Source of the DNA: Octopus sinensis
Taxonomy: Eukaryota
Direction: 5' to 3'
Length of the DNA: 64,000 nt
Assembly (NCBI RefSeq): GCF_006345805.1
Contig: NC_043001.1
Coordinates: 84,258,001-84,322,000, forward strand
The notes under the pieces were generated by a model that was not told where the DNA came from, did no database searches, and worked only from the letters and a program-made list of their open reading frames with translations. Positions within the stretch are counted from its first letter, which is position 1. The number at the start of each line of letters is the position of its first letter. Shown here piece by piece: positions 2,193 through 62,100 of this stretch. The translations under genes and the position numbers were made by a program.

Positions 2193-5100
2193 GTGAGTTA
2201 ACATTATTATTATGTCAAAAGAAGAAAAAAAAGACAAAAAACTAGACTATTTAGGAACAAAGTCTGAATTTTGTGTTGGGGTAGGTTTCAGTTGATATCG
2301 AAAACAGTATTTGACTGATACATTACTTTATCGGCCCCGGAGGTATGAAAGGTAAAGCTGATCACGGTGTAATTTGAACTAAGAACGTAAAACACCCCGA
2401 ATATATCCTGCATGGCATTTCATCCGATCCTCTAACCATTCTACAACCCTTGCTGCCTAAAAGCAATGTTAATTATAATTCCTTCTACTATAGGCACGAG
2501 GTCTAAACGTTTGGGGTAAGATAACCAATCGATTAAGGCGGCGAGCTGGCAGAAACATTAGCACGCCGGGAGAAATGTTTAGCGGTATTTCGTCTGCCGT
2601 TACGTTCTGAGTTCAAATTCCGCCGAGGTCGACTTTGCCTTTCATCCTTTCGAGGTCGATAAATTAAGTACCAGTTACGCACTGGGGTCGGTATAATCGA
2701 CTTAATCCGTCTGTCCTTGTTTGTCTTACTCTGTGTTTAGCCCCTTGTGGATAGTAAAGGAATAGGTATTTCGTCTGCCTTCACGTTTTGAGTTCAAATT
2801 CCGCCGAGGTCGACTTTGTCTTTCATCCTTTCGGGATGCAGACTGGGGTCGATATAATCGACTAGCCCCTCCCCCCAAATTTCGGGCCTTGTGCCTAGAG
2901 GAGAAAAGAATCGTAAGCATGTCGGGCTAATTGTTTAGCGGCGTTTCGTCCGTCTTTACGTTCTCAGTTCAAATGCTGCTGAGATCGACTTTGCCTTTCG
3001 GGGGTCCATAAGAATCAGTTGAGCATTGGAGTCGATCTTATCGATTTAGCCCCAACTTCCGAAATTGCTGGCCTTGTACCAAAATTTGGCAGAATCGTTA
3101 GCAAGCCGAACAAAACGTGTAGCGGCATTTCGTCCGTCTTTATTATTTTATTATTTTACTCTTTTACTTGTTCCAGTCATTTGACTGTGTCCATGTTGGA
3201 GCACCGCCTTTAGTCGAGCAAATCGACCCCAGGACTTATTCTTTGTAAGCCTAGTACTTATTCTATCAGTCTCTTTTGCCGAACCACTAAGTTACCGGAA
3301 CGTAAACACACCAGCACCGGTTATCAAGCGATGTTGGAGGGACAAACACAGACAACAAGCACACACACACACACACACACACACATATATATATATATAT
3401 ACACATATACGACGGGCTTCTTTTCAGTTTCCTCTACCAAAGTCACTCACAAAGCTTTGATCGGCCCGAGGTTATAGTAGAAGACACTTGCCCAAGGTGC
3501 CACGCAGTGGGACTGAACCCGGAACCATGTGGTTGGTAAGCAAGCTACTTACCACACAGCCACTCCTTCGCCTATATTATTTCACCCTTTTAAAATCAAT
3601 AAAATAAGTACCAGTTGAACACTGCAACCAACTTTTTCCTGACCCGAAATTACTGGCCTTGTCCCCAAATTTGATGATAATGTTTTCTCATACTTTCCAG
3701 TGTCAAAATTATGTTCCAAAGAAAATCTAATGACGGAATGTCAACCGTGTGTAACCGGTGGATTTTATTCGCATCCGAACGACCAAGGCAGATATTACCA
3801 ATGTGTTTATGGTGTACTTCTGCCAAAATATTGTCAATCTGGAACCATTTGGTACCAACATACAAGGACGTGTATCTTCGACTGTAAGCAATTTCGATTA
3901 TAAAACAACTCTTCTTCTTCTTCTTCTTCTTCTTCTTCTTCTTCTTCTTCTTCTTCTTCTTCTTCTTCTTCTTCTTCTTCTTCTTCTCCTTCTCCTCCTC
4001 CTCCTTCTTCTTCTTCTTCTTCTTCTTCTTCTTCTTCTTCTTCTTCTTCTTTATTCTTTCTTTTTTCTCTTGTTCTAAACCTTATTTCTTTTCTTCTCTG
4101 CTCTTCCTCTCTTCCTTCACTAGTACACCACCACCACCACTATTTCGTCGTTGCCATCAACGTCATCGTTATCGTCGTCGTGGTGGTCATCGTCCTCCTC
4201 TTCCACCTCTTCCTCCTCATCAATCACTTCTTCACCTTTTTCTTTCTCCTTTCTGTTTTTCCTTTGCTTCTTTCTTTCATCATCTAATCGATCCCTTCAC
4301 AAACATCCCACCACCACCACCACCACCACCACCACCACCACCAACCACCACCACCACCACCACCACCACCTCTTCTTACTCCTCTCCTCCTCCTCCTTCT
4401 TCTTCTTCTTCTTCTTCTCTCTTCTTCTTCTTCTTCTTCTTCTTTATTCTTTCTTTTTTCTCTTGTTCTAAACCTTATTTCTTTTCTTCTCTGCTCTTCC
4501 TCTCTTCCTTCACTAGTACACCACCACCACCACTATTCGTCGTTGCCATCAACGTCATCGTTATCGTCGTCGTGGTGGTCATCGTCCTCCTCTTCCACCT
4601 CTTCCTCCTCATCAATCACTTCTTCACCTTTTTCTTTCTCCTTTCTGTTTTTCCTTTGCTTCTTTCTTTCATCATCTAATCGATCCCTTCACAAACATCC
4701 CACCACCACCACCACCACCACCACCACCAACCACCACCACCACCACCACCTCTTCTTACTCCTCCTCCTCCTCAAAAATAGAATATAGTGCGTTAGTTGT
4801 ATACAAGGTTTTTGTTATGATCTACATTAGTATATCTTGGTATACCCACAGAAACATATGAATGAAGCAATGGAGGTCATTCTCAGTATGAATCTGTCAA
4901 AGGAGTGTGATATAACATAAGGGGATATCAATTAAGGCACGAAACCCAAATATACACATTTCATATTTCCTTCTTTTCCATGCTTTATATTTTTAAAAAA
5001 TATATGATTTTTTTTATTTGTTTCTAGTTCTGTCACGATGGAAGAACAAGTTGAATATACGTAGGGACGGCCTGGATGTTCAACCGACACAAGTTCAAAG

Positions 5101-59100: not shown

Positions 59101-62100
59101 TAAAATAGAGAGATGATAACTGAAACATATAGTACACTGCAGCAGTTTTAATATCCGAGGAAGATTTTCAGGATAATGGATAATGAAACCAACCAAAAGA
59201 TGGCTATGCAACATTATGGTTATTTAGCAATAACAGTCGAATAATAACCCATAACTTAGACTGTATTGTACAAGTTTTCTCTATCTGGAATTGGTAGTGG
59301 GGCAATTGTTGTAAATCATCAGAACATTTATTTGCAAAATTTGTGTGCCTTTCATTTATAAATTAAAATCCAATAAGTTCAACCTCGATAAATATTACTC
59401 CTAATAAACTTATCAGAATAGGGTCAATGTAACCCTTTCCATAACGCACGTCATAACAAAACAGATTACCTTATTTTCCGGCACACAAAGCAACATTTTC
59501 AAAACAAAATTTGAAGCCAAATGAGGGAAGTCGACTTACAGACCAAAGATAGCTCCCAGGAATCCAAAATTCCATGTGAAATGCAATATGGTTTGGAAAG
59601 ATAGTGACAATATTTGAACACGAATGTTTACACAGTAGTTATGTTTTACGTCGACTTGCATGACGGAAAATACGGAAATATTTTATTAATTTCATTTTCT
59701 TTTCTTCTCACAGCCACACCCTTGTGTGTATTTGACACTAACAACACTCGGTGTATACCCTGCCAACCGAACAGTTACTACCCGAAGTTTAAATCGATCT
59801 CACAGTTCTACCAGTGCAGTCATGGACTTTTGTTTCTCATGCAGTGTCCAGACAAGACAGTCTGGAATGAAGCATCCATCAAATGTGTTTATGGACGTAA
59901 GTTACATAAGTTACTGTGAGTATGTGTGTAAGTGGGGGGGGGGTGCACACACATATGCGTATGGTGTGAAAGAGTATGTATATACGTATGTACTTATTTG
60001 TATAAGCATTGTGTTACCAGAAATCTGTCCAAAGCATATATATATGTATGTATTTATGTATATATATATATAGTTATATATGTGTACATCTGTGTATACA
60101 TATATGAGTTCAGATGAGGCCAACTGGTTTACTCAAAGATTCCTTCCTCTATCCTTGGGCTCACTTAATTTCGGTAATCCATTATAATCTCGTACCTTCT
60201 TCATTATTAAACAGTCGCCTTTTTGGCTGGACACTTTGTCGTATACTGTTTGGTGTTTGTTTACATTATTAAAATACAACTGTCCTGAGAATACCAGTGA
60301 ACTGACCAACGAAATATAAGTTCTTATTCAACTAACGAGTTATTTTTTTCTAAAACGCTTTTAATATTTGAGTGAATGCCTTAGAGGTTATCTAACGTTT
60401 TACGACAAACAAGCTATTATCTGGAGTTTGGAAATTTGTGCCCGATAGCATTCTGTATATCTTACTTAACGCGGAAAACTATGGTTTTCGTCTTGAGAAA
60501 GTATCTCGCATAGACGTATAGTGCTAAAAAGAACAGAAGAATATTAGTAGGAGACGGAAATATTCATTAGTGTCGATGGAATTGCTCGATTCAAGTATTT
60601 GCTTCTTTAAGTGTCATCAGTCACAGGTACTTTGTCCACTTTCAACGGCATGCTTTGACAAATTTAGCCTCTCCTGATACAGCAAATGTGTGATTCACAA
60701 ATTACCGGTGTCGCAAATGGCCGGATGGCTAGATAAAATTTCGTTGTTAACAATGGAAGCAGTGTTAGTTCAAAATAGCATTCTGAATATTTTAATTAAT
60801 ATGGATACAGTGTAAGAAAGCCACAAAACTGTAGTTGTCGTCTTGTGAAAGTTTCTTGTCTAGACGTACAGAACTAAAAGTTACAGAAGTATCAGTAGTA
60901 AACGGAAGGTGCTCAGTAACGGCGGTGAAATTTCTAAATATAGATTTCTGCTTATTTGACTACCATAAGTAGCAAGTATTCACTATCAACTGCATGCTTA
61001 GACAAATTTAAGCTCCACTAATATAGAAAACATTTATTCTCGAATCACAAATATCACAAACAACTGGCAGGCTAGGCATCTATTCGTTATTAGCGTTAGG
61101 TATTTAGCAGACTCCGGTGTACTAATCGACGTTTTAGAAACAGAAGTGACTGCAAACTACATACGGAATGGCATATATATATATATATATATATATATAT
61201 ATAATTATAAAATAAATAGGCCTTTTTAAAGCCTAGCTAGGCTCATGGGCCTGGTTTCCCGGTTTCAATGGCGTATGTGTTCCCCAGCTGAACGGGGACT
61301 GAGTGGACTGGAGCAACGTGAAACGAAGTGTTTTGCTCAAGAACACAACGTGTCGCCCGGTCCAGGAATCGAAACCATAATCTTACGATCATGATGCTGA
61401 CACCCTAACCACTAAGCCACACGCCTACACACACATATATATATATATTGCAGGAGTAAAATTGTTCATAGTATTCGTGTAAGCGCGCATATCCATACCT
61501 ACACATACTATGAACATTTTTACCCGCTTACTTTTACTCCCTCCCCTCACTTAGCAGTCATTCAAATAACTCTTTTGTCTTAATAACGGTCAATCACGCA
61601 GTAATTTCCCTTTGTATAACCGTCATTTTTCATAGCATTTTTCTGATGGCCGGATAACTGAAGAGATGGCGGCGTGGATTTCCACCTCGGCATCCGAAAC
61701 TCGGAGTTTTATCATGGCTACCGAATAATTGTCACATATTACATTTACAGATAAATTCCTCTATTTATATAATATCGAGGTCTCTTTCATTCTTTTGTTG
61801 TCTTACCATTTCTATCAATATATATATATATATATATATGTATATATATATATATATATATATATATATATATATATATATATATTATATATATATATAT
61901 ATATAATATATATATAAGAACAAATTAACGAGTACCTTTTAAGAAACAATGTGAAATTTTCAGTCAGTAAACTTGATTATCTTGCGGAAATGGTTTTAAA
62001 ATGTATCTGAATTTAAGTATGTGAAAATTTATGTATAAAGACAATTCTGTTAGTTAATCTGAAATTTTGTTTGTTTGATTTCCAGCTGAACGGTATTGGT

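Follow-up and report, generated by a model that had tools for sequence, protein, structure and literature searches.

The peritrophin-A domain (PAD, ChtBD2 or CBM14; Pfam PF01607), found in insect peritrophins and in the mollusc protein EHEP of Aplysia kurodai (PDB 8IN3), has a canonical register of six cysteines, CX13-20CX5-6CX9-19CX10-14CX4-14C, which the crystal structure of EHEP shows to be bonded as C1-C3, C2-C6 and C4-C5 (PMC10619976). Across CBM14 structures only the equivalents of C1-C3 and C4-C5 are common to all, and in human chitotriosidase (CHIT1) a third bond is formed by Cys460 and Cys462, a pair conserved in at least 150 chitinase-linked modules (PMC4844120). Larger complements are found in peritrophin-B (8 cysteines in 81-88 residues) and peritrophin-C (10 cysteines in 121-122 residues; PMC5776124). 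Here we describe a 64,000-nucleotide (nt) stretch of the Octopus sinensis genome (contig NC_043001.1, positions 84,258,001 to 84,322,000 of the forward strand; hereafter the window), which holds most of the gene LOC118763360. This gene encodes a very large protein, represented in our dataset by P0001, with 11 copies of a six-cysteine module in which C2 and C6 are absent and two other cysteines precede C1.

Following peritrophin-A numbering, we name the cysteines of the module Ca-x8-Cb-x2-C1, then C3, C4 and C5. The module resembles the peritrophin-A domain in its Pfam match, its predicted distorted beta-sandwich, its core of C1-x(17-19)-C3-x9-C4-x12-C5 with the motifs FYxC and CP..T.W, and its tandem multi-domain use in a secreted protein. 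Unlike that domain, it lacks C2 (the CX5-6C step) and C6, adds Ca-x8-Cb-x2 before C1, and is cut off by the end of its exon three residues past C5. The CBM14 modules of chitinases (chitotriosidase and AMCase; 5HBF, 6SO0) likewise lack C2 and C6 and keep C1-C3 and C4-C5, and that of CHIT1 is the best structural match to our octopus model, with an aromatic at C5+2 (Trp465, against Tyr/Phe in the octopus). However, the third bond of CHIT1 is a local CxC just before C5, whereas the extra octopus pair is N-terminal to C1, and no cysteine lies between C4 and C5 in any of the 11 copies. Peritrophin-B and peritrophin-C were excluded as the home of the pattern by cysteine number and length, the octopus module having 6 cysteines in 54 residues.

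Long CBM14 arrays without C2 and C6 are found in vertebrate proteins named "cbd-1-like", "chondroitin proteoglycan-2-like" or "mucin-like" (lamprey, hagfish and Polypterus; P0004, P0006 and P0009), but these have four cysteines per module or other extra pairs, such as that of P0006, with one cysteine seven residues before C1 and one between C3 and C4, and none has Ca-x8-Cb-x2-C1. Insect intestinal mucins and mucin-peritrophins resemble the octopus protein in combining a signal peptide with several CBM14 modules and a long spacer of low complexity; the octopus spacer, however, is a Gly-rich repeat (115 units) and not a Pro/Thr/Ser mucin, and the domain cysteine register differs. The CD164/MGC-24 sialomucins (PF05283) resemble two small relatives of the octopus protein, P0045 and P0070, in their Ser/Thr-rich stalk, transmembrane helix and short tail, with a match of P0045 to PF05283 (E = 1.5e-4, 22.5 bits) that lies below the cut-off of 28.5 bits. 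Unlike these sialomucins, the octopus protein has no transmembrane or MGC-24 region, and no match to PF05283 was found in P0001 or in its Argonauta relative P0002. Finally, chitin-binding beak protein 3 of the squid Dosidicus gigas (7BWE) is also a chitin-associated cephalopod protein and gave a marginal profile match (E = 0.33, positions 23-57), but it is absent from the fold-search matches.

The octopus module, its fold and its relatives

A six-frame regular-expression scan of the window for C-x8-C-x2-C-x17-C-x9-C-x12-C gave exactly 11 matches, all on the plus strand, and none in 20 mononucleotide shuffles of the window read in six frames. A profile built from the 11 copies found no additional or degenerate copy in the window, the next best match having E = 0.39. 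Each copy is a discrete exon of 60-61 codons, with a polypyrimidine-AG acceptor 11 nt before the first cysteine (8 nt in copy 2) and a GT donor 10 nt after the last (7 nt in copy 4), and all are phase 1-1. The exons are D1 (3701-3883, first cysteine at 3712), D2 (6331-6510, 6339), D3 (6999-7181, 7010), D4 (10512-10691, 10523), D5 (19085-19267, 19096), D6 (27125-27307, 27136), D7 (41196-41378, 41207), D8 (45805-45987, 45816), D9 (49552-49734, 49563), D10 (56706-56888, 56717) and D11 (59714-59896, 59725); D2 and D4 are of 180 nt and the others of 183 nt. D2 is spliced directly to D3 and D4 to the Gly-rich exon, and D1 (residues 91-151 of P0001) and D10 form a subtype of their own (SKLC...YSHP and SKMC...YSHP, respectively); D7 corresponds to residues 886-945 of P0001. 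Pairwise identity among the copies is 23-70%, with zero indels from first to last cysteine; the six cysteines, G37, L39 and W50 are invariant, and Y22, Y32, P45 and T48 nearly so. An earlier note on this DNA had described 11 copies of invariant spacing between 3701 and 59896, with the motif YP...FYQC-x9-CP-x-T-[IV]-W-x6-C-x-Y; the scan and the shuffles bear out the count, the motif is accurate for the alignment of the 11 copies, and the two positions are the exact outermost bounds of the domain exons.

The 11 copies are self-contained domain exons of the single gene LOC118763360. Its predicted product P0001 (1,350 amino acids, 11 domain matches, 946 bits) is XP_036358737.1, "uncharacterized protein LOC118763360 isoform X50", and maps onto the window exon by exon. 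All 26 junctions checked (2192 to 62086) have one unique canonical GT-AG solution each, and every intron is in phase 1. The gene extends past both ends of the window, and the first 77 and last 9 codons of P0001 lie outside the window or were not found in it. The N-terminus of P0001 is a hydrophobic, signal-peptide-like segment, and the product is a large secreted modular protein.

The module is, on profile match and predicted fold, a CBM14 domain. Against the Pfam gathering score of 22.1 bits, five single-exon peptides scored 23.1-34.8 bits and the whole of P0001 gave 11 matched stretches (224.3 bits), with all 11 copies above the gathering score, although each match covers only profile positions 1 to about 47 of 53. 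The 11-copy profile aligns gap-free to the Trichuris chitinase 6g9c (E = 3.8e-7), to CHIT1 (6so0/5hbf) and to Der p 23 (4zce). In this register the third octopus cysteine falls on C1 and those that follow on C3, C4 and C5, so that the cysteines of the two universal disulfides are present and invariant in all 11 copies; the C2 column is non-cysteine and there is no C6, and a search of P0001 for the canonical register gave no matches.

An AlphaFold2 model of D7, made from an 11-sequence alignment, has five strands and a mean predicted local distance difference test (pLDDT) score of 93.6, with values of 89-94 in the Ca-Cb segment. The 11 top-ranking PDB matches to it in Foldseek are all CBM14 (probability 0.98-1.00; noise below these), and include Der p 23, CHIT1, Aplysia EHEP, Avr4, Blo t 12, tachycitin and Der f 23. 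The root-mean-square deviation from CHIT1 is 1.2 A over 44 columns. In the model, C1 and C5 delimit the structurally shared core, to which the Ca-Cb segment is added. The earlier note had assigned the copies to CBM14, with their last four cysteines as C1, C3, C4 and C5 and with C2 and C6 missing from the canonical C1-C3, C2-C6 and C4-C5 scheme; each element of this holds, by the crystal structure of EHEP cited above for the bonds, by the gap-free alignment to solved modules for the register, and by the two checks it proposed for the family, since all 11 copies pass the Pfam profile and structure prediction returns a CBM14 fold and not an unrelated one.

We investigated the distribution of the module with a profile, run exhaustively against 1.84 billion representative proteins; pattern counts were taken over the best 150 representatives. 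Two proteins stood far above all others: P0001, and P0002, a partial hypothetical protein of Argonauta hians (1,315 amino acids, 7 matches). The canonical register was found in 102 of the 150 and the strict octopus pattern in 5, namely P0001, P0002, P0106, P0045 and P0070. P0106 is a raw genomic open reading frame, a fragment corresponding to exon 7 in a related octopus. P0070 lies on intron-less contigs from three sequencing runs, including SRR3011300, which is a whole-animal transcriptome of Sepia pharaonis (PMC5541922); P0045 comes from JGI record 3300019054, in our reading a marine metatranscriptome. Each of the two proteins is small and has a signal peptide, two to three such modules, a Ser/Thr-rich stalk, a transmembrane helix and a short tail. 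Metagenome and metatranscriptome scans with P0070 and P0045 as queries returned no further family members.

Judged from these sequences, the variant is a small cephalopod subfamily, present in octopodiforms and decapodiforms in two different architectures. The earlier note had proposed a distinct subfamily and had named, as a finding that would speak against it, that the spacing be common in described CBM14 families; with 5 occurrences in the best 150 representatives it is rare, and its recurrence in other cephalopods upholds the proposal. Two further features of the small proteins were noted. P0070 and P0045 (L001-L004) have a conserved juxtamembrane SFDGASFGGGI, a CCC motif and a GY.QH. tail. 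The third domain of P0045 lacks C3, and its second domain has two extra cysteines.

The absence of C2 and C6 is more widespread. Both are missing from 166 domains of 27 proteins among the best 150, including lamprey, hagfish and bichir "cbd-1-like / CPG2-like" proteins, and human CHIT1 also has no C2. Loss of C2 and C6 is thus common and already described, a variable third CBM14 disulfide is established, and the octopus arrangement is a further version of it. Because the third disulfide was already known to vary, the "rewiring" is less remarkable than it looked, and only modestly surprising.

The domains are more strongly constrained than the linkers, which upholds the constraint that the earlier note had supposed. 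Over the seven domains shared by Octopus and Argonauta, identity is 80.4% with 0 gap columns, against 61.7% and 14 gap columns in the linkers.

Proposed function and its chief alternative

The explanation that we favour, at a probability of about 0.7, is that a single gene encodes modules of a cephalopod-specific CBM14 variant with a Ca-Cb loop, which together make up a multivalent chitin-associated protein. Each module would keep the two universal core disulfides, C1-C3 and C4-C5. It lacks the C-terminal tail that bears C6, and its partner C2, and a 12-residue N-terminal extension adds Ca and Cb in the arrangement Ca-x8-Cb-x2-C1. These two are most likely bonded to each other, closing a small loop that may often be N-glycosylated. 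Strung on Cys-free linkers and on one Gly-rich repeat of about 1,300 residues, several modules could grip chitin fibrils, with the disordered repeat and the linkers acting as flexible spacers.

The residues that would contact the ligand are largely retained. The C5+2 position, equivalent to the chitin-contact residue Trp465 of CHIT1 (PMC4844120), is Tyr or Phe in 9 of the 11 copies, and W50 is invariant, so that the modules may plausibly bind chitin. The overall design points the same way. Multivalent CBM14 arrays combined with spacers of low complexity are the classic design of proteins of chitin matrices, as in the peritrophins and mucins of insects. Since the 11 modules on flexible linkers, with a Gly-rich spacer, resemble proteins of this kind, a role in a matrix or lining is favoured, and we infer by analogy that the protein is a multivalent chitin-associated component of such a structure.

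The Ca-Cb loop carries a recurrent N-x-[ST] sequon. It occurs at the same loop position in D7 (41222-41230), D8 (45831-45839), D9 (49578-49586) and D11 (59740-59748) in both Octopus and Argonauta, and sequons lie in the Ca-Cb loop of every domain of P0045 and P0070, one of them spanning Cb itself (N-C-T). The loop is therefore probably glycosylated in many copies.

These features are also open to a reading in which the fold is that of CBM14 and the ligand is not chitin, which we consider doubtful but deserving of serious attention. The modules might bind polyphenols, as Aplysia EHEP does, or glycans or proteins, or they might form protease-resistant glycosylated beads of a mucin-like barrier, a role for which the recurrent sequons would be suited. 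In line with this, two proteins of this fold, Der p 23 and the mollusc PAD protein EHEP, do not bind chitin, and the binding-critical residues are not conserved across the family (PMC10619976). The same variant is moreover carried by the small CD164/MGC-24-like sialomucins (from Sepia and from the metatranscriptome), which would be cell-surface and not matrix proteins. Against this reading stand the aromatics kept at the contact positions and the multivalent design with low-complexity spacers, as set out above.

The behaviour of EHEP and Der p 23 counts against a chitin-associated protein more generally, and three other points reduce our confidence in the favoured explanation. The case for a Ca-Cb bond is built from cysteine parity and from the secondary-structure pattern of a model. 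P0001 and P0002 are gene predictions, and the modelling is unreliable inside the Gly-rich exon. We found no literature on LOC118763360; in the literature on mollusc chitin-binding domains we likewise found no discussion of cysteine variants.

Probable pairing and possible origin of the added cysteines

Nine of the ten inter-domain junctions contain Cys-free linkers, and therefore the 66 domain cysteines must pair within their exons, each exon being an autonomous six-cysteine unit. If the bonds C1-C3 and C4-C5 are retained, Ca and Cb have only each other as partners. In the D7 model, DSSP places bridges at residues 3, 5 and 14, which flank Ca (residue 4) and Cb (residue 13), a pattern that fits a cross-strand Ca-Cb bond. 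Ca and Cb are invariant, at a fixed x8 spacing, in 23 of 23 domains of the four full-length family members. From the parity of the cysteines and the modelled strands, we infer that Ca and Cb are bonded to each other. The earlier note had gone further and proposed that this bond replaces C2-C6. The loss of C2 and C6 is as it described; the replacement is an overstatement, because C2-C6 ties down a C-terminal tail that is absent here, whereas the putative Ca-Cb bond would close an added N-terminal loop.

A different disulfide isomer, or free or intermolecular cysteines, would also satisfy the cysteine count; for instance, Cb might bond C1 across the x2 step with Ca bonded to C3, or Ca and Cb might form cross-links that polymerise the protein. 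The Cb-x2-C1 step is a CxxC with proline at the second x in 8 of the 11 copies, and the mature N-terminal region of P0001 has an odd number of cysteines (five), which suggests that some intermolecular bonding occurs in any case. We nonetheless regard this reading as improbable: CHIT1 and the modelled C1-to-C5 core superpose at 1.2 A, every solved CBM14 structure has the C1-C3 and C4-C5 bonds (PMC4844120), and the invariance of Ca and Cb in all 23 domains, at fixed spacing, is typical of an intradomain loop.

Slightly less credible again is an origin of the Ca-Cb segment as what is left of the C5-C6 tail of an upstream CBM14 domain that has decayed, in which case the linkers would be eroded domains and the duplication boundary would have shifted. 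There are points of likeness: the residues that follow Ca (C-[IVL]-[FY]-[GED]) resemble those that follow C5 (C-[IV]-[YF]-[DEG]), and canonical x8 tails have an aromatic at +2, N at +5 and P at +7 in common. In another protein, P0049, canonical domains are packed as C5-x7-C6-x2-C1, with the spacing of Ca-x8-Cb-x2-C1. When the loops were scored on a position-specific scoring matrix (PSSM) of canonical tails, 0 of 5,000 within-loop shuffles reached the observed score, a result inflated by the kinship of the loops. The scores themselves, however, are negative (mean -4.3 bits), Pfam finds no half-domain in any linker plus Ca-Cb segment, and the loops of the distant members P0045 and P0070 are unlike canonical tails; on these three grounds the relic was demoted to a low-probability alternative. 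P0049 itself (L005, 1131-2102) is an intron-less frame of 323 amino acids with six canonical CBM14 domains and two residues between each C6 and the next C1, on a 2.2 kb contig (SRR12008146) with another open reading frame, of 161 amino acids, 470 nt upstream; this compact layout suggests a virus or an intron-poor genome.

The possibility that Ca is simply the C6 of the preceding domain, offset by the exon frame, so that the modules would be near-canonical from C1 to C6 with only C2 moved, can be dismissed almost entirely: all exons are phase 1-1, direct splicing would give the canonical C5-C6 spacing (C5-x7-Ca), the Pfam match of a conceptual four-exon product reaches position 51 of 53, where the next Ca lines up with position 53, and D2 and D3 are truly joined directly, but the other nine of ten junctions hold Cys-free linkers of 20-60 residues, conserved in Argonauta, or the Cys-free Gly-rich exon that follows D4 (by the gene model and the Argonauta orthologue), which rules the reading out at those nine, direct joins of D1 to D2 and of D5 to D6 would create TAG and TAA stops, respectively, because D1 and D5 end in T, and in Sepia P0070 the signal peptide is followed at once by a first domain of this pattern.

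Architecture of the gene and significance of the module

Besides the 11 domain exons, the window contains 14 short Cys-free linker exons and one Gly-rich exon of about 3.9 kb, with all exons on the plus strand. An upstream exon at 2153-2192 (5' bound provisional) encodes residues 78-90 of P0001, and the exon after D11, at 62086-62171 (3' bound provisional), encodes residues 1313-1341. Single linker exons lie between D1 and D2 (5028-5108), D3 and D4 (8343-8495, ending in EPIDPT), the Gly-rich exon and D5 (18089-18163), D7 and D8 (44864-44932), and D10 and D11 (57461-57523, ending in EPIDPT). Pairs of linker exons lie between D5 and D6 (20179-20283 and 21106-21168), D6 and D7 (28393-28506 and 34369-34419), D8 and D9 (47262-47303 and 47723-47797, the latter ending in EPINPN), and D9 and D10 (50592-50633 and 55650-55727). 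The linker exon just upstream of most domain exons ends in EPI[DN]P[NT] or [AV][IV]NPN (e.g. 8478-8495, 47780-47797 and 57506-57523), a conserved motif in which Pfam finds no match and which suggests that the functional unit may exceed the domain exon. Since all introns in the window are in phase 1, skipping or duplication of any exon preserves the reading frame, the two direct joins that create stops being the exceptions to free joining; this fits the existence of at least 50 predicted isoforms of the gene.

The Gly-rich exon (11593-15578, phase 1 at both ends) contains 115 copies of a 30-nt unit at 11712-15166, which encodes a ten-residue peptide. Near 12,300-12,330, where two extra bases are apparently present in one unit, the open frame passes from frame 2 to frame 1, a change that may be real or an assembly error. 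RefSeq isoform X50 bypasses most of the repeat through internal "introns". In the Argonauta orthologue this position is occupied by a Gly/Ser-rich repeat of different sequence (about GGSGGSGNVGT), and therefore the Gly-rich repeat evolves fast.

A few other features of the locus were recorded. Encoded 5' of the window, residues 30-77 of P0001 form a mature N-terminus with five cysteines, as two CX3C pairs (C32/C36 and C62/C66) and a single C76, and this odd count suggests one free cysteine for intermolecular cross-linking. Microsatellites are present in many introns, as (CTT)n directly after the D1 donor and as (ATT)n, (AC)n and (AT)n (e.g. 3890-4700, 16150-16290 and 55020-55450). The window is AT-rich outside the Gly-rich exon (about 35% GC), and that exon reaches up to 62% GC. 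No RNA genes were found in the window.

A more ambitious interpretation, which we offer as a long shot, is that the disulfide-closed, N-glycosylated loop is a cephalopod innovation that gives CBM14 a new binding surface or specificity (e.g. for beta-chitin or a non-chitin ligand), and that it was deployed twice, in an octopod Gly-rich matrix protein and in decapodiform CD164-like sialomucins.

The practical impact of these results is limited, as there is nothing unconventional in the fold, the core bonds or the likely function. The octopus arrangement nonetheless would add a third solution for the variable third disulfide of CBM14, after C2-C6 in the peritrophins and Cys460-Cys462 in the chitinases, and it defines a compact cephalopod module of 54 residues that should be easy to express and test. 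It also provides a first functional handle on an uncharacterised and very large octopus protein of 11 modules and a Gly-rich repeat of some 1,300 residues, and marks this protein as a candidate constituent of one of the chitinous structures of cephalopods, for example the beak, the radula, the sucker lining or the gut cuticle.

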